From: Macrostomum lignano | Lineage: Eukaryota | Direction: 5' to 3' | DNA length: 64,000 bases | Assembly (NCBI GenBank): GCA_002269645.1 | Contig: NIVC01000012.1 | Coordinates: 806,001 to 870,000 of the forward strand | In this document: piece after piece, positions 6,552-57,200 of the stretch | Position numbering within the stretch: the stretch's first letter is position 1 | How the letters are laid out: each line of letters opens with the position of its first letter | The notes under the pieces: generated by a model | Seen by the model: the letters and a program-made list of their open reading frames with translations, nothing else | Told to the model about the DNA's origin: nothing | The model's database searches: none | Program-made: the position numbers and the translations under genes

Positions 6552-12364
<5,813 letters not shown>

Positions 12365-13147: not shown

Positions 13148-14310
13148 TTCCTGTCTCTTGGTAGGCGCCACCCTGTCTCTTGGTGGGGGTTCCTGTCTCT
13201 TGGTGGGGGTTCCTGTCTCTTGGTGGGGGTTCCTGTCTCTTGGTGGGCGCCATCCTGTCTCTTGTTGGGCGCCTCCCTGTCTCTTGGTGGGGGTTCCTGT
13301 CTCTTGGTGGGGGTTCCTGTCTCTTGGTGGGGGTTCCTGTCTCTTGGTGGGCGCCATCCTGTCTCTTGGTGGGCGCCATCCTGTCTCTTGGTGGGCGCCA
13401 CCCTGTCTCTTGTTGGGCGCCACCCTGTCTCTTGGTGGGGGTTCCTGTCTCTTGGTGGGGGTTCCTGTCTCTTGTTGGGCGCCACCCTGTCTCTTGTTGG
13501 GCGCCATCCTGTCTCTTGTTGGGCGCCATACTGTCTCTTGTTGGGCGCCACCCTGTCTCTTGTTGGGCGCCTCCCTGTCTCTTGGTGGGGGTTCCTGTCT
13601 CTTGTTGGGCGCCACCCTGTCTCTTGGTGGGGGTTCCTGTCTCTTGGTGAAGGTTCCTGTCTCTTGTTGGGCGCCATCCTGTCTCTTGTTGGGCGCCACC
13701 CTGTCTCTTGTTGGGCGCCATCCTGTCTCTTGTTGGGCGCCATACTGTCTCTTGTTGGGCGCCACCCTGTCTCTTGTTGGGCGCCACCCTGTCTCTTGTT
13801 GGGCGCCACCCTGTCTCTTGGTGGGGGTTCCTGTCTCTTGTTGGGCGCCACCCTGTCTCTTGGTGGGGGTTCCTGTCTCTTGTTGGGCGTCACCCTGTCT
13901 CTTGGTGGGGGTTCCTGTCTCTTGTTGGGCGCCACCCTGTCTCTTGGTGGGGGTTCCTGTTTCTTGTTGGGCGCCACCCTGTCTCTTGGTGGGGGTTCCT
14001 GTCTCTTGTTGGGCGCCACCCTGTCTCTTGGTGGGCGCCTCTTGTTGGGCGCCACCCTGTCTCTTGTTGGGCGCCACCCTGTCTCTTGTTGGGCGCCATC
14101 CTGTCTCTTGGTGGGGGTTCCTGTCTCTTGTTGGGCGCCACCCTGTCTCTTGGTGGGGGTTCCTGTTTCTTGTTGGGCGCCACCCTGTCTCTTGGTGGGC
14201 GCCTCTTGTTGGGCGCCATCCTGTCTCTTGTTGGGCGCCACCCTGTCTCTTGTTCAGCGCCACCCTGTCGGCGCCACCCTGTCTCTTGTTGGGCGCCACC
14301 CTGTCTCATG
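13148..14310. repeat. Intergenic two-variant minisatellite: core CCTGTCTCTTG plus either GTGGGGGTT or TTGGGCGCCA(C/T)
   Basis: Direct reading; interspersed ~20- and ~22-nt units with almost no stop codons on either strand. Confidence 0.95.
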
Positions 14311-15040
14311 GCCACTGCAAGCACGAAACACTGTTCAAAAAATGTGTCACTAAGATAGAAGAAAAACAACTTCACTGTTTAGCTAGTTCGAGCAAAACTA
14401 GACTAATTTATTTTTAAGAGATCATTAATCAAAAACTAGGACATATGTAATTTAATCGATAGAATCAGTTAAGAGTCGAACAATTATAATTAAGATTGTT
14501 ACAATAATTAACTCGAAAAGCAGATAAAAGATTTTGTTTTGAGCAATCATTGAGCACTTACATGTATTTCCACTGCATGTAAGCGAGGAATCGCAAGAAT
14601 CAAACATGATGGGATTAAAATATGACAGCTTAATTTTAAATAGTAACAGACTAAAATAATTATTAGTATGATAAAATTATATTCAATGATGTAATCTCAT
14701 TAGCTAAATTAGTGTAAATTTTTTTATTACTGTAACGTTTTTGGCAAGCGGTTCTCAATGAAATGTTTCATACTGCAACGCATATCAATGATACTACTGA
14801 TGATATCTTCAATACACAAGTAGAAAAGAATGTATAAAATCATAATATATAGATAGTGAAGGAAGCGCTGAATCAGTGATGGAATCGCTAAATAATTAAT
14901 GAGAAATCTCTTAGTAAATCCTAGCAGCTTGAATTTCAAGCCTGATTAAACAAGTCTCCTAATTCCTGTTATTAAATTATGTATAATTCTCTTTCCCTGG
15001 TCGGGCCTGGATTCAAACGGAAACCAGTCCGGTCTTTCAG

Positions 15041-23182
<8,142 letters not shown>

Positions 23183-23189
23183 CTGTGGT

Positions 23190-24515
<1,326 letters not shown>

Positions 24516-25876
24516 ATATATATTCACAATGCCTGACTTTATTTCCTACCTTGATAGCAAATGAATTTCAAACTGAGCAGTGATGAAGCTATTGAAGCAG
24601 GCTGTCCCAACGTAGTGTTTCGGGCTCATATACTTATTCCACAGCTGCTCTCGTGGCCTGGAAATCGTGCACAGTGCAGTCTCGGGCACTCTATTCGGCT
24701 CAAATAGAAGAGAAGACAGAATGCACAAGCAAAGCAATTCAACGAAAAGACCCCACTGTGCTGTGCTATGCCATGGGCCATGATATTCCTCCATTGTTCT
24801 CACACCCAGCCGATGCTGGAGTACAATTGAGCCAGTCCAGAGATGAAAAAGCCCTCGCAGAGAGAGGTTTGAGAACCAATTAGAATCAAGTTTTGCGTGT
24901 ACAGATTTTCAGCTGAGTACAGAGCTCAGAGTTACATTTAGACAATCTTGCAGCTTCGAAGTCACTCTTTGCTAACTCCATTTTCCGTTGACTTTGCGTA
25001 CCTCTGCTTCGGGGTTTAGTTTGTCAACTCGGACCGAAAACTGAAGTTGAGAGACACACCCTCTGGCTAAAAAATGACGCAGAGAGAGTTGGATGCTATT
25101 GCACTTTTGTATTTTGCTCACTTGGTCACCCTACTGGTCACAGAGCACCTGGGCTTGCTATTTATTTGCAACCAGTATAACAAACTGACTTGTCTTTACA
25201 TGAGACACGAAAGCTCGAAGCCATATGCCTATCTAAAGGTATTGCGTCTGAAGAAGTCTAATGGCATCCCCATTAAAACCGTATATAAAGCCAAATTGCA
25301 GGTGTGACAATTAGAGACTTAATAAAGCCAACAGCTAATGGCGTCATGCATCTTTTTATCTAGCTCTGTACTTTGAATTATTTTGAATACACACATTTTC
25401 ATTTGTCTGGATCTCGAAGAATATTCAACAAATTGCCATGAAAATCCAGAACACGGGCAAAAATTTTCCGCTTTTTTCGATGGAGCAACTTCGAGAATCA
25501 CGAAAAATCGGCATCGTCGAGATATTCAACGATTCTCCTCGGGGTGTCTGGTGGCAAAAACCACCAACATTGGCGAATTTTTTCTGCTCACAAAATCTCA
25601 TCCTGAAACCACGTCGTCTCAACAAACTATGCAAATCAGTCGCAGGGACTTTTGCTCTCAGCATCCCAGGCACCAGGGTCCCCTTCATCTCCGTCTGGAG
25701 CATCGGTGGCGACCGTCGGGACCTTCAAAAAAGCACCCGATCGGCATCTCAGAGACGGCTGCGTTCCCAAAACTGAAATGGAAGAATCCTCTTCTGCATG
25801 CAGCATTCAGTCAGTAGACATAATCGGTGAATGAAATGGACGATGGCAACCCTCTAGGCTGACCTGTAGACATACA

Positions 25877-29590: not shown

Positions 29591-30536
29591 CAGAAGGGTT
29601 AACAGCAGCAAGAAGCGAATGCCTTAAGCTGAAACTTATCCATAATTGAAGGCTGCTGTAGAACATCCAACAGTCTCGAACAACATGGAAAGTCTTCAAC
29701 AGTTTTTAGTTTCTGGCACTCTTAAATTTTACAAGTCTCATTTTACCGTCGCGAGCAATTTGGCCAAATTTTAAATCTTATATTTACAGGTAACTTTCAC
29801 GCGACTAAACAAGACGCATCCGTTGATGAATTGGAAGAGCCGTCTGTATAGACAAAGCAAATATTATTCGGCAAATTCAATAAAATGTTTTTTTTTATAT
29901 CGTCAACGCAGAATTGTGCATAAGAAGCATAAATCTATAGATTCCATCACGCGGATTTTTCAGAGCCTCAAATCCTATGAAACACATCCTACGCGCTTAT
30001 AGCCGTCGATTTTAATCCCTTGACGTAGGTGCCTAAGCCGATTACGAATCTTTCTGTAAACGATTTCTCGTCAACGGATAAGACAAAGACGTCCAAAAAT
30101 TGTTCAGAAAATTACTGGGGCTCAGCTGTCGCCGGCCCTGATTCGAGTCCCATAATTGGAGATGAAATCGGCTTTGAAGGCATCCTAAAAATTACAAAAT
30201 AACGGAATGGAAGATTAAAATGATAGCAGAAGGTTCGCCAAAGAGTAACGTGAAGCTGGATTCTGCATGATTTCAAAATTTATTTTTATTTTTATCGAAA
30301 TCGCGAAATCCACCAAAGAGATGGTTGCGCTATAAAGCAATTAAAGCAATTTGTTGTTTGCCTCGGAAATCGTCGTCCCCAGGTGTATTTCGCCTTTTCT
30401 CTCCGCAGGCCTTGCTTTTGACTTCAAAGCAAACAAGAAAATAAAAAAGACAAATTTTTATCATGCGCGTTTCTTTCTCGCGTTTAGACTGCAGCCTTCG
30501 CAGGCCAGGATGAGGAGCTCAAAGAAGGAGATTAAG

Positions 30537-31584
30537 CTAGGCTACCTGGCAGACCCGGGCAAATTTCCCACCGGACCACTTGCACTCGCCCAGGCAGCAC
30601 TCGCCGTCGCTCGAGCAGCGATCGTTCTCGAACAGGCAGGACACACAGGTGCCGCCCTTGAACGGGTTGCTGTTGAAACGGCAGTAGCCGGTGCAGCAAC
30701 GGGCCCACGGCATCTTGTAGCACTCCTGGCCGATGCTGCGACATCCGGCGTCAACTGGAAATCCGGCAAAAAAAACAAGCACAGCGGGTTCAACTTGCGG
30801 GAAAAGTTTGATACCATCAGATTGATTTGGGTCCGTGCATTTCTGGTATTAGCGTAGTGCCTATGTACTTACTGTCGAAACTGGAACAATTCTAGAACGC
30901 TAAAGAGCTAGCCATTGGCCAAATATCGTACCATCAAAGTCTAACGGCTTAATTTTAAACGTATAAAAGAGGAGCCTCACAAAGTTTTACAGATCGGTAC
31001 GATCGAACGCAACACTTCCACGGGCCTCCCCCCTGCGCAAGGCCCTGCTTGGACTCAACCGCAGGGACATCAGGGCGGTGACCATGGCCCTCTCGGATCA
31101 TGGCTGTTTTGCCAGGTATCGCCACCTTCAGGGAAAAATCCGCAGTGAGGAATGCCCCTTCTGCCTCTCCGGTGTCGAGAATGCGGAGCACTTTATCTGT
31201 GAATGCCCCGCATTTACTCAGGACAGGCTCACCTACCTCGGCCCAAACCCGAACCTCTCCGACGTTTTCAGGCCCGAGAATCTCTGCCAGCTCGTCCACT
31301 ACCTAAGGGCTACCGGGCGAGCGACAATCCACCTCCTGGACTCTCCGGAGGGGGACCGCGCTGCGGACACCGGCGCCACCGGAACTCCCTGCGCGACACC
31401 GCAGCACTAGCTGCCCGTCTTCGCCAGGGGTTAGCGAAATGGGCGGCAACGCCTCCTCGCTGCATCCGGATGCACGGAGCCCCTGCAGCTGAGTCAAGTA
31501 TGTCAACACTTCCACTGGAGAAAACTTACCGCTAGAGAAGCAAGCAACTGTTGCCACAGCAATGCACAGCAGAATCTTCATCAT
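30537..31584 (-). CDS. Secreted double inhibitor-cystine-knot (knottin) peptide, 90-aa precursor. Exons 31584-31530 and 30754-30537
   Basis: Exon 1 [18 protein letters not shown](G|GTAAG) joins in phase 1 to TTCCAG|(V)[71 protein letters not shown]. Two C-C-CC-C-C frameworks. Confidence 0.88.
31030..31506 (+). mobile_element. 5'-truncated non-LTR retrotransposon: ORF2 C-terminal CCHC zinc domain plus 3' end, antisense in the knottin intron
   Basis: [22 protein letters not shown]...[21 protein letters not shown] matches the C-terminal GH...CxxC..E..EH...CP domain of LINE ORF2 (Loa/I-like). Confidence 0.8.
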
Positions 31585-32099
31585 GATTGCCAGTTTGAAG
31601 TGGAATATTTATGTTTGCTATACAAATCGACTATTTTTTGCCGAAGTTTGTTTGCTTAGGGCTAGCTGGAAGTGAGCAGATCGCATGCCTCATATAGGGG
31701 CTTGAGCTATTAGTCAGGTCCGGAAGTCGATAGGATTCGAAAATTAACTTCCGGTAATTCCGCTTTCAGTTAAACGTAGCTGAGGGAATTTTTTTCACGT
31801 CCAGGATAGTTTCAGTCGTTCATGACTGGGCAATTAAGTTGGTGTTTTGATAGCCAAAGCTGCAGAATACAAAAAAATCGTGAAAGTTGGCTGATCGCAA
31901 AACGATTCGAATGAAACGAATCACACTGCGAGTCACGCTGGGGAAACTCTCAAAGTTTTACATGCCCCTTCTGTATATTTATCGATCACAAGTCTGTCAC
32001 AGGCCGGATGCTTGCATTGCAGTTTTTCGACTGGTGGTCCAAGCTTAGAGATATTGGGACCGCTTCGTATAAGGGGTACCAGCGCCATCGGTCCCAAGG

Positions 32100-33524: not shown

Positions 33525-48031
<14,507 letters not shown>

Positions 48032-49918: not shown

Positions 49919-51440
49919 ATGATGCTCTCGGTAGCTGTCTTGCTTTACCTCTGCAGCACAGCAATCACAACCAACGAGGCCGGGACCTCCGAGTGGCGGG
50001 CTCAGCGCGACGACCCCGCCGACTACCTGGTTGACCGCGCCGTCCGCGCCGCCAGCCGCATCTCGTGCGTCTCTCTGGCCAGCGAGAGGCACCAAGCCGT
50101 CTCATTCTCTGGCGATGAAGGCATCTGCCAGCTTCTGACTTGCCGCCTGGGACGCAACGGCTGCAGGAAGTGCCGGCACGCCGTGAACCCCGGCCTGCCT
50201 CTGCTTTGGGTGAGCTGCTCAGAAATGTAAAAAGCCTAATTTAAATTAAAATGCATTGGCGAAATAGGAAACAGGTTAATTTTTAGCAATTTCATCTTCT
50301 GTCAGTTTGTTTGAATCCAAAATGTAATTTCTCCCGAGATGGTTATTTACAAGTACGAGCGTACATGTAGATAGAACTGACTTGGAAAAAACATACTACC
50401 AAATCAAATCAATTATTGTCTCTCCAGTATGTTTTTTCGTCCTGAAATTGTCCTTGTTTGGGGGCAAAGACAACTTACCGCACGCTTTTACTGCACATAA
50501 AATATCCGTTCGGAGACACGATATACTCTTAGCATTTTGCCAGTCTCCCATAAATAAACGCTCTTTGTGCATGGTCTTCTCCTCACGGACCAACAGAAGT
50601 GAGACGCTTTACTAGATTTTCTTAGAAAAGATCTCGATGCCGGGTAAAGAAACTTATACTTGACACATCGCTGGTGCATTTAGTATGCTCTCGAGAACGC
50701 ATAGCAATGACTGGGGGTTTCGCCATAGACAGATGTATAAACTGGAAGGGTTTCACGACACACGAAATCTTCTCACTACCAGCTTGAACGAAAATCAGTC
50801 AACGATCTGATTTCAGGTGAGGCAACTGGACGGCCTCGGGCCGGGCCGCTGCTGGCGAACCTTCCAGCACAGGGTGGACGCCTCTATCAACTTCTACCGC
50901 AACTGGGCGGACTACGTGTCCGAGTTCGGACAGGGTGAGGACAGAAACTTCTGGATGGGCCTGGAGGCGATCCACCTGCTGACTCGAGCTGGCGACAGGA
51001 GAGTGAGATGGGAGATGAGCTCGTGGAACGGCAGCTGGTGGTGGTGGGAGAATGTCGTGTTCGCTGTGCAGGGCGCTGATCAGGACTATCGAGTCTCCGT
51101 GGGCGCCCAGGACGTCGACCGGTCAAACGTCATTCAATGCCCAATGAACTCCTGGCTGTTCATGAATAACCAGAAGTTCAGCGCTCCGGACAGAGACATG
51201 GATTCGTATTCCAAAGATAACTGCGCCAGCATGTACCACGGAGGCTGGTGGTACAGCGCCTGCCACTGCTTCAACCCGAATGGTCGATACTTCACGCCTC
51301 CGACAGCTCTCAGCCTCACGGGATCGAACTGGGCCACTGGAATCGTATTCTCGAGGTACTATCCAGCCCCTGATCCGTCACCGCTAGACTACACCTACTC
51401 TATGCGCACATTCGAGTGCCTGCTGAGTGATCAACTTTGA
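49919..51440 (+). CDS. Secreted fibrinogen-related protein (FReD) with a degenerate N-terminal PAN/apple-like module, 304 aa. Exons 49919-50209 and 50817-51440
   Basis: Signal peptide MMLSVAVLLYLCSTA. Phase-0 intron (TGG|GTGAGC ... TTTCAG|GTG). FReD motifs WRTFQHRVDASINFYRNWADY..FG, FWMGLEAIHLLT, KFSAPDRDMD...NCASMYHGGWWYSAC..NPNGRY. Confidence 0.9.
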
Positions 51441-54287: not shown

Positions 54288-57200
54288 TTAATAAGGATAA
54301 TGAGTCGCATTGAGCTGCTGCTGCTGCTGCTGTTGCTGCTGCTGTTGCTGCAATTGCTGCTGCTGCTGCTGAATTGCTGCCGTGTAGCCATTGGCTGCAG
54401 AAGCGCTGCTTACGGCCGCTGCTGCGGCGGCTGCGGCGGCCGCCGGACCGAATGCCTGCTGATAGGCGCCAGCTGCGGAACAATAAGGGTTGGTTTCTAT
54501 TGTGTCTCAGACTGAAGTGCCTAACCAGAATCGGATCTGTCTCTCAGCCAATCAGAATCCGATTCATTTTGTCAGCCAATAAGAATCGGATCTATCTCTC
54601 AGCCAATCAGACTCGGATCAATCTCTCAGCCAATCAGAATTGATTCATTCTCTCAGCCAATCAGAAGCTGATTCATCTCTCAGGCAATCAGAATTGATTC
54701 ATCTCTCAGCCAATCAGAAGCTGATTCATCTCTCAGCCAATCAGAAGCTGATTCATCTCTCAGCCAATCAGAAGCTGATTCATCTCTCAGCCAATCAGAA
54801 GCTGATTCATCTCTCAGCCAATCAGAAGCTGATTCATCTCTTAGCCAATCAGAATATCTTTCATTCTCCCAACCCAACATACCGGCATCCCCGGAAAGTT
54901 GATTCCTCAAGTACTCAAACGCTGCAGTTGAAGAACCGGCTCCGTAAGCGTCCCAATTTGAAGCTGCCGCAGCTGCGGCGGCTGCCGCTGCAGCCGCGGC
55001 CGCCGAAGACGATGAAGGCACAACCGAGGTGGCAGACGATGATGTCACTTGAGTTGGCTGCGGCTGCATCGGAGGCGGTGGAGGCAACTGCGCCGGCTGT
55101 TGCTGCTGCTGCTGATGCTGCTGCTGCTGCGGGTGAGCAGCCATGGCAGTCCAGGCTGGACCGTACGGACCCGGAGGAAAGCCGGGCGGTCTGTACTGGT
55201 GCGCATAGGCGCCCCCAGCATAGTACGAAGCTAGCAGAGCCTGCGACGCCCCGAAGCCAGGCGGCACTGGCACCCGCTCCCGGTCCTGCATGCTCTGAAT
55301 GTCTTCCAGCACTTCGTCGAGAAAATCTCGGCCGGGTATGCCGACAACACCGCCAGGCCCGGTGCTGACCCCGGGGCCGCCGCCCAGCTCAGGCGGTGTC
55401 CAGTGACGCTTCCTAGCGGCCGCTGCTGCTACGGCAGCCTGATTGAACAGGTGCTGCTGATGCTGCTGCTGCTGAAGATGCTGCTGATGCTGTTGCAGCA
55501 ATTGTTGCTGCTGCTGCTGTTGTTGCTGCTGCAAGTGGTGCTGCTGCTGTTGCTGCTGCGGCTGCTGCTGCTGCTGCTCTCGCTGGGGCGCATGAACCGA
55601 GCGAATGTGAGAGCGCAGCGACCACTTGCTTGAGTAGGACTTGTTGCAGTGCGGGCAAGTCTGCTTCTGCTGTTGCTGTTGCTGCGACTGCTGCTGCTGC
55701 TGCTGCTGCTGGATGTGCTGTTGCTGCTGGAAGTGGGCCAGATGTTGCTGCTGCTGCTGCTGCTGCTGTTGTTGCTGGGGAAAATAACTTTGCGCCTGAG
55801 CATACATAGGCATTCTGTACTGCGGATGCTGCTGCTGCTGTTGTTGCAGTTGCTGCTGATGAAGCTGCTGCTGCTGCTGCTGCTGATGATGCTGCTGATG
55901 GTGCTGCTGCTGCTGATGGTGGGCAGGGTGAACGGGCGGAGCGGGCGGCGGGGGCGGCGGCGGAGGCAGCTTCCTTGGCGCGTGATGAGCCTGGTACTGC
56001 TCAACATCGATGCTCTCAGTGTTGGCTAGGATGTCATCCAGGCCAGTCATTGCCGAGCCAAGGAATTTTGTTGGCTGCTGCTCTTTATCCTGGGCTGGAG
56101 GCTGGGATGCTGCCTCATCGGCCTGCAATTATGATGCCATCATCTCATTGATATCTGCGATATTTTATAATTATTTTAAAAGCTTCCTATTCCGTCTAAT
56201 GCAATTTTCAATTCACTTTAGCACTAATTAATATGCCATACCTGGAATCTTACACCTGTTAATACCGGGATCCCACTAACCAGAATCCCACATCTGTTAA
56301 TATCCCATTACCTGAATCTCACATCTGTTAATATCCCACTAACTGGAATCTCACACCTGTTAATATCCAATTACCTGGAATATCACACCTGTTAATATCC
56401 AATTACCTGGAATCTTACACCTGTTGATACCGGGATCCCACTAACCAGAATCCCACATCTGTTAATATCCCATTACCTGAATCTCACATCTGTTAATATC
56501 CCACTAACTGGAATCTCACACCTGTTAATATCCAATTACCTGGAATATCACACCTGTTAATATCCAATTACCTGGAATCTTACACCTGTTGATACCGGGA
56601 TCCCACTAACCAGAATCCCACATCTGTTAATATCCCATTATCTGAATCTCACACCTGTTAATATCCCACTAACTGGAATCTCACACCTGTTAATATCCAA
56701 TTACCTGGAATATCACACCTGTTAATATCCAATTACCTGGAATCTCACACCTGTTAATACCGGGATCCTACTAACCTGAATCTCACACCTGTTTATATCC
56801 CATTACCTGGAATATCACACCTGTTAATATTCAAATACCCGGAATCTCACACCTGTTTATATCACACCTCCAAATTTAGCATCAGTTATTAGAAATTTCT
56901 TAAGTCGAACAGATGTTGCTGCCACTCACTCTGCCTTAGTCTTGACACCACTAATGAAACCCAATAAATTAAAGCATATAAGCGAACCGTTTTAGCTGGC
57001 TCCTCAGAACCATCCGCCAGAACTTTATCTGCCTTCGCAGCTTCCACAGATGTCGAAGGCAGCGCCACATCGCCAGACGCTGTTGTCTTAGATTCGCCAG
57101 AGTCCAACATACCATTGCTGCACTGCTCTGGCGTCTTCTCCCCGGCAGTTGGACTTAGTCGAGCCAATTTCGCTGCTGGCTCCTCGACGGCAGCTTCAGC

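Follow-up and report, generated by a model that had tools for sequence, protein, structure and literature searches.

Peptides in which two inhibitor cystine knots (ICKs) follow one another within a single chain have been published from spiders (DkTx and Hi1a) and from a remipede (Xt3a), i.e., in all cases from venoms. The two domains of these known bivalent toxins are plainly alike, with Xt3a, for example, being a double-ICK toxin that is made of calcin-like repeats. Bivalency in turn gives rise to avidity, that is, on TRPV1 with DkTx, on ASIC1a with Hi1a, and on RyR with Xt3a. The linkers that separate the two domains consist of 6 residues in Hi1a and of 12 residues in DkTx.

A different point of reference is the Pfam family UPF0506 (PF11703), proteins of which have been named from Schistosoma, Schistocephalus, and Opisthorchis, and also from Anopheles. 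UPF0506 has been termed a knottin fold, and is found in secretomes of the cestode Schistocephalus solidus while being absent from the proteomes of that animal (PMC8400842). In adult Schistosoma mansoni it also serves as a specific marker of the parenchyma, its transcript is enriched in cercariae of S. japonicum, a UPF0506 gene is down-regulated in Opisthorchis viverrini taken from diabetic hamsters, and in Anopheles stephensi a set of 120 midgut genes responsive to infection, temperature, and time includes the UPF0506 label. These published mentions assign no function to the family, and nowhere in the literature searched is UPF0506 presented as a tandem knot. No paper in that literature pairs Macrostomum with knottins, and inhibitor cystine knot in combination with flatworm gave nothing relevant. 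A 2026 preprint describes the binding of an S. mansoni 'hypothetical protein UPF0506' to human IGFBP1, as seen in a primary screen. That binding is not accepted here as functional evidence, as it was not reciprocated and as the gene ID involved is ambiguous. Specifically, the UPF0506 panel of the preprint is labeled Smp_311670, which in other papers is the Kunitz inhibitor SmKI-1, so that either the ID or the name may be wrong.

Considered here is a small gene from a flatworm which, unlike the parasites and the mosquito of those published mentions, is free-living, i.e., Macrostomum lignano. The gene is found on the minus strand of the window, meaning the whole 64,000-nucleotide stretch of DNA that was analyzed, which belongs to contig NIVC01000012.1, and all positions are given as those of the window. 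On balance, this appears to be a functional gene, carried in three nearly identical copies, which encodes a secreted, two-module UPF0506 knottin peptide, a reading which we consider probable though well short of assured. That the peptide has an extracellular role in defence or binding is the least certain part of the reading, and is less likely than not. We use here the terms K1 and K2 to describe the first and the second of these modules, respectively.

Gene model and precursor

Read on the minus strand, the gene begins at 31584 with its ATG, which is preceded at a distance of nine codons by an in-frame TAA. Exon 1 (31530-31584, 55 nt) supplies this start codon, residues 1-18 of the signal peptide, and, of codon 19, the first base only, i.e., it ends in phase 1. 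There follows a 775-nt intron (30755-31529), which opens with GTAAGT and closes with a polypyrimidine tract and CAG (as TTTCCAG), and then exon 2 (30537-30754, 218 nt), which carries the end of the signal peptide, K1, K2, a QVA tail, and a TAG stop codon (30539-30537). The spliced coding sequence is 273 nt long and specifies a 90-aa precursor. On the same strand, 112 nt upstream of the ATG, is a TATA-like element (TATATG, 31691-31696), a putative core promoter as judged by motif match only, and 247-253 nt past the stop codon are two overlapping AATAAA polyadenylation signals (30279-30290).

Following its hydrophobic leader, the precursor displays 12 Cys residues, which are spaced as C-x6-C-x7-CC-x3-C-x11-C, then VS, then C-x6-C-x5-CC-x3-C-x10-C, and finally Gln-Val-Ala. 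The order C-C-CC-C-C, within ~30-35 residues, is present in K1 and again in K2. By the -3/-1 rule, the likeliest, putative signal cleavage is that after Val-Asp-Ala21 (VDA, A21), which would yield a 69-aa mature peptide, ~7.6 kDa in size and with a net charge of +2.6. Coordinates, the 31530/30754 splice junction, and Cys spacing as originally proposed for this gene all were reproduced by this minus-strand reading. So too was the phase 1 ending of the exon that carries the leader. The further idea that the signal peptide has that exon to itself is close to correct, though not exactly so, since the putative cleavage site is located 3 residues into exon 2. The whole of the mature peptide, K1 and K2 together, that is, comes from a single exon.

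K1 (C23-C55; 30645-30743, minus strand) consists of 33 residues, is cationic (+3.7), and contains many aromatic residues. K2 (C58-C87; 30549-30638, minus strand) consists of 30 residues and is acidic (-1.3). Between them is a linker of just two residues, Val56-Ser57 (30639-30644, minus strand), which is without a dibasic or other processing motif. Reading of the full 90-aa precursor for an N-glycosylation sequon, an amidation signal, or a dibasic site revealed none of these, and given no dibasic site K1 and K2 therefore should remain joined. That there exist two ICK-type Cys frameworks within one spliced, secreted-type precursor, as had been the core of the original prediction, thus is borne out by the gene model along with the absence of a processing site from the linker.

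No further paralogue of the peptide gene was found within the 64-kb window using tblastn with the mature peptide, nor did an Rfam scan of the window match any RNA family. The intron, separately, carries a GC-rich, repeat-like insert with a 110-aa antisense open reading frame (ORF) at 31078-31410 (plus strand), and this insert with its antisense ORF is found in all three genomic copies. The ORF presumably resembles the C-terminal Cys/His region of ORF2 of a non-LTR retrotransposon, while a Pfam search of it returned nothing at E<=0.01.

Genomic copies and constraint

The identical 90-aa product already exists in the databases as BOX15_Mlig011635g2/g4, i.e., as PAA56754.1, PAA63340.1, and PAA94306.1, and as UniProt A0A267E785. 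These GenBank and UniProt entries are named hypothetical or uncharacterised, each with PF11703 as a precomputed domain. For assembly GCA_002269645.1, the sole source of the GenBank annotation was a set of transcript assemblies from RNA-seq, with ORFs called by TransDecoder (PMC5730564). That this transcript-built annotation contains the identical 90-aa model therefore is indirect evidence of a spliced transcript with junction 31530/30754. As to where in M. lignano such a transcript is expressed, Mlig011635 was not found in the literature full text searched, nor among the entries listed in supplements of M. lignano expression papers.

The peptide gene is found in three genomic copies, that is, on this contig and on two further contigs, where the gene order, all on one strand, of cadherin, peptide gene, and ammonium transporter is kept. 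Three near-identical copies fit with the known redundancy of the polyploid M. lignano genome. Exon 1 does not differ across the three copies, whereas between copies there are 2-3 differences in exon 2. In total the coding sequence displays three substitutions among the copies, every one of which is synonymous, and the chance of seeing this under neutrality is ~0.01 (given 58 synonymous and 212 non-synonymous sites). Divergence among the copies is 3.7% in the 5' flank (31585-31884, the 300 nt before the ATG), while the 3' flank (30237-30536, the 300 nt past the stop) is 100% identical across all three. The latter identity could be a consequence of a constrained 3' UTR or, instead, of gene conversion which ends near the 5' end of the gene. 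The intron possesses indels among the copies, being ~104 nt longer in the other two and rearranged in its middle part. It is this rearranged segment of ~100 nt, which adjoins the ORF-containing insert, that sets the present copy apart from the other two. The peptide gene, in short, is functional, transcribed, and under constraint.

The cadherin gene is a large one, exons of which (matching Pfam Cadherin with E as low as 3e-32) are seen upstream on the strand of the peptide gene, at 37307-47449 (minus strand) of the window and at 1-7715 of L001 and L002. This copy, however, lacks a called cadherin gene within 10 kb of the peptide gene.

Membership in UPF0506

Against the UPF0506 profile the precursor scores 31.7 bits and the mature peptide 32.4 bits, with a gathering threshold of 23.2 bits. 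The match places residues 23-79 onto profile positions 1-56 of 59 and therefore runs from the first Cys of K1 through five Cys of K2. K1 on its own is placed on positions 1-33 at 17 bits, with K2 contributing ~15 bits more. When non-Cys residues were shuffled with Cys held fixed (n=10), nine shuffles gave no match at all and the remaining one reached 15.6 bits, so the match requires more than the Cys skeleton. The profile is overrun at its end by the last loop of K2, which is 10 residues in length, and indeed a K2 variant with a 4-residue loop has its match extended to position 58. A single Cys-to-Ser change, be it in the first half or in the second, lowers the score by ~3 bits, though these Cys-to-Ser and loop-length probes, with most scores at 29.3 bits and a composition scatter of ~2 bits, are of qualitative use only.

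Swapping of the modules is informative as to what the profile describes. A K1K1 construct gives 30.2 bits over profile positions 1-56, K2K1 gives 17.4 bits with K1 only being matched, on positions 1-33, and K2K2 is placed on positions 29-56 at 17.6 bits. Neither DkTx nor Hi1a, their sequences entered by hand for this probe, matches the profile. Together these probes suggest that the UPF0506 profile itself consists of two knot-like modules whose order is fixed, and indicate that it does not respond to double knots in general. Thus the two-module layout looks to be family-wide rather than an invention of this one gene. The M. lignano peptide also is like UPF0506 proteins in being small, secreted, and Cys-rich, with the probes giving the same order of a K1-like followed by a K2-like module.

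Searches for relatives by other means returned only the protein itself. These were a word-indexed search of 5.8 billion proteins, an exhaustive phmmer search of 1.84 billion representatives (where, with a 72-residue query and a library this large, weak relatives fall outside the 1e-3 cut-off), and a scan of JGI metagenome contigs by back-translation. The peptide's link to the UPF0506 family is made, that is, solely by way of the Pfam profile.

It had been suggested originally that the architecture is a rare one and that it comes from a lineage not known for such peptides. That suggestion does not survive, as the peptide falls within UPF0506, a family to which a knottin fold has already been ascribed in work on flatworms, and as the profile covers both modules. 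Whether the peptide is identical with a member of an already described family, which would have counted against the original prediction, has a two-part answer: Protein and family indeed both are catalogued, but a function has never been described for them. What may be new, given that both the M. lignano 90-aa protein and UPF0506 are already on record, is the reading of UPF0506 as a non-venom family of double knots with a two-residue linker.

Fold of the modules

AlphaFold2 modeling of the full mature peptide, as done without an alignment, reached a pLDDT of 45.6, and Foldseek matches of that model are meaningless. With K2 modeled alone, K1 serving as the sole other alignment row, the best model reached a pLDDT of 85.5 and the other four of the five ranged from 66 down to 50. 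This best model displays a C-terminal beta-hairpin, with strands at 20-22 and 29-31. Among its Foldseek neighbours in the PDB, ~40 of 45 are knottins, all at E > 0.5 as the query consists of just 32 residues. The closest superposition is with SOTI-III (TM 0.83, rmsd 1.7 A, E 1.3), imperatoxin A superposes at TM 0.70, and further neighbours include the sea-anemone peptide Tst2, Magi4, Hi1a, DkTx, atracotoxins, and conotoxins. Based on this model, K2 looks like an inhibitor cystine knot.

Sequence searches against PDB chains provide, for each module, a single-domain counterpart. For K2 the match is to imperatoxin A, a calcin, which is gapless from first to last Cys (E 0.16) and reflects an identical spacing of C-x6-C-x5-CC-x3-C-x10-C. 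The calcins are strongly basic, however, whereas K2 is acidic. For K1 the best match is to Ep-AMP1, an antimicrobial knottin from cactus, which is gapless over 33 residues (E 0.026). The motifs IGQ.C, RCC.G, and PF.GG.C are common to both, though the fifth Cys of K1 is displaced by two residues relative to that of Ep-AMP1. The E-values of these two likenesses are weak and convergence may be their cause. It is plausible nevertheless, going by its Cys pattern and this match, that K1 too is a complete knottin. We infer, therefore, that each half is a complete and autonomous ICK module of ~33 residues, one which for K2 is supported by the model and for K1 is plausible.

Comparison with double-knot toxins

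Like DkTx, Hi1a, and Xt3a, the flatworm peptide appears to have two ICK-type modules within one mature chain, and, as in the Hc1a subfamily, a single exon encodes the entirety of its mature peptide. The K2 model, in addition, superposes on the lobes of Hi1a and DkTx at a predicted TM of 0.61-0.63. The differences are these. With two residues only, the flatworm linker is shorter than that of either Hi1a or DkTx, the modules are of opposite charge and dissimilar to one another, and the flatworm peptide is without a venom context. That dissimilarity can be quantified: A global alignment of K1 with K2 scores 35, which compares with a mean of 28.9 (sd 9.9) for Cys-fixed shuffles (p = 0.27). Any duplication giving rise to the two modules therefore is old, and a recent internal duplication as the source of K1 and K2 was rejected on the same grounds, i.e., similarity that is no better than that of shuffles.

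By phmmer against all PDB chains, with E up to 10, no homology to DkTx, Hi1a, or Xt3a was found, nor is there a Pfam family that is common to the flatworm peptide and DkTx or Hi1a. From sequence comparison it would appear, then, that the flatworm peptide is not a member of these toxin families, even if by analogy it may be, as they are, a rigid bivalent binder. The designation 'toxin', as originally applied to the peptide, accordingly is not retained, there being neither homology to DkTx or Hi1a nor evidence of a venom or of a target.

Possible functions

Many of the knottins of plants and of non-venomous invertebrates are defence peptides. It is in part for this reason, i.e., that many non-venom knottins serve in defence, that a role for the M. 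lignano peptide as an extracellular defence or binding peptide, for example as an effector that is antimicrobial, antiparasitic, or surface-binding, is favoured here. That role is favoured also because flatworms, both free-living and parasitic, and a mosquito possess the family, with secretion or parenchyma as its settings, and because K1 is cationic, rich in aromatics, and has an antimicrobial knottin as its best match. Mechanistically, K1 and K2 would be fused via Val-Ser into one uncut chain, with the cationic, aromatic-rich face of K1 making contact and with a rigidly attached K2 supplying a second surface along with stability. The two-module layout in this scenario would be the architecture of UPF0506 itself rather than a duplication that is recent to this lineage. 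This assignment of function, made by analogy, is a tentative one, as the net charge of the peptide is no more than +2.6 and as the likeness of K1 to the plant antimicrobial knottin is weak (E 0.026). It is preferred nonetheless over action as a signaling ligand or antagonist, over a neurotoxin, and over a protease inhibitor, with some probability left for other roles such as one in seminal fluid.

A venom neurotoxin is what the double-knot architecture might most readily call to mind. The two knots in that case would engage neighbouring sites of a multimeric ion channel, of prey or of a predator, and thereby gain avidity as do DkTx, Hi1a, and Xt3a. Consistent with this are two ICK-type modules in a single chain with no cleavage site between them, the occurrence of Hi1a and DkTx among structural neighbours of the K2 model, the identity in Cys spacing between K2 and imperatoxin A, a calcin (the repeats of Xt3a being calcin-like), and sub-threshold Pfam matches of K2 that are to spider-toxin families (Toxin_29, 23.2 bits versus a cut-off of 25). 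Sequence homology to DkTx or Hi1a is lacking, however, the charge of K2 is opposite to that of the strongly basic calcins, and K1 and K2 resemble one another only at the level of Cys-skeleton shuffles, unlike the self-similar domains of bivalent toxins. UPF0506, furthermore, is known from the parenchyma or secretome of parasitic flatworms and from mosquito midgut, none of which is a venom setting. M. lignano itself feeds on diatoms, and is not known to possess a venom apparatus. We do not consider an identity as venom neurotoxin to be likely, and would regard it as slightly less probable than the signaling role that is considered next.

If instead the 12 Cys form a single integrated domain, then the two halves would be packed together by the two-residue junction, perhaps even cross-linked by disulfides in the manner of Dickkopf- or colipase-type Cys-rich domains, and would present one binding surface such as that of an extracellular signaling ligand or antagonist. 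A sub-threshold Dickkopf_N match (18.9 bits versus a cut-off of 25) does extend across the K1/K2 junction, chains of a Dkk-LRP6 complex are found among the Foldseek neighbours of K2, the Pfam curators' model is of one 59-position domain, and the linker is far below the lengths seen in Hi1a (6) and DkTx (12). The IGFBP1 binding from the preprint would fit as well, except that this interaction is unreciprocated and that Smp_311670 is a Kunitz inhibitor elsewhere. Against a single domain are the predicted knot of K2 when modeled alone, at its pLDDT of 85.5, the end-to-end match of either half to complete single-domain knottins, and the continued placement of K1 alone onto UPF0506 positions 1-33. 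We consider this reading to be improbable, if still worth keeping in mind. Far less probable is a knottin-type protease inhibitor, with the canonical loop of one module presented to a serine protease or carboxypeptidase. That idea owes its existence to SOTI-III, a spinach trypsin inhibitor, being the closest superposition of the K2 model, but the Foldseek E-value of that superposition is 1.3 and the neighbours overall span every functional class of knottin. There is, moreover, no sequence match to any inhibitor family and, as read from the sequence, no recognisable squash-type reactive loop (Pro-Arg/Lys-Ile-Leu).

To the defence or binding role that is preferred here may be added a broader and more speculative idea, one for which the chances seem rather slim. 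This is that UPF0506 might be an ancient family, unconnected with venom, of double knottins that are fused rigidly, and that flatworms might share it with at least some arthropods. The dissimilar modules would then jointly engage, in bivalent fashion, a multimeric receptor or ion channel, which could belong to the animal itself or to a microbe, a host, or a predator.

Significance

Should UPF0506 as a whole possess a fused two-knot layout, then the tandem-ICK architecture exists also outside of venoms. It would exist, that is, in animals of medical importance, given that schistosomes, liver flukes, and tapeworms are among those in which UPF0506 proteins are expressed or secreted. Were the bivalent-ligand reading true as well, then this would be the first double ICK from outside of arthropod venoms, its linker of 2 residues would be the shortest known, and a function would be at hand for a family which schistosomes and tapeworms both express and secrete. 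M. lignano is amenable to both RNAi and transgenesis and is in this regard a practical organism for the study of UPF0506 function. A two-knot scaffold with a two-residue linker, in addition, could be of interest to peptide engineers.

Other features of the window

Where introns and flanks of the ammonium-transporter gene, which is downstream of the peptide gene, are expected, i.e., over 2954-24520, the window contains unusually dense micro- and minisatellite arrays. These include the tetranucleotide arrays (GTTA)n at 15281-16449 and (GATA)n at 23190-24520, along with arrays of 12- to 42-nt units at 8722-9300, 11454-12142, 13148-14311, 18764-19391, 20491-21229, and 21660-22415. Many of the long 'ORFs' of this region are repeat artefacts. 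At 50817-51440 (plus strand) there is an ORF whose product matches PF00147, the C-terminal globular domain of fibrinogen (E 3e-36), that is, a ficolin/FREP-like lectin domain, and domains of this kind frequently are linked to invertebrate innate immunity. Lastly, a 482-aa ORF at 54680-56128 (minus strand) displays a C2H2 zinc finger just under the Pfam cut-off (24.1 versus 25.2 bits), and contains TGC/CTG repeats at 55452-55578 and 55820-55918 which would yield homopolymer runs.
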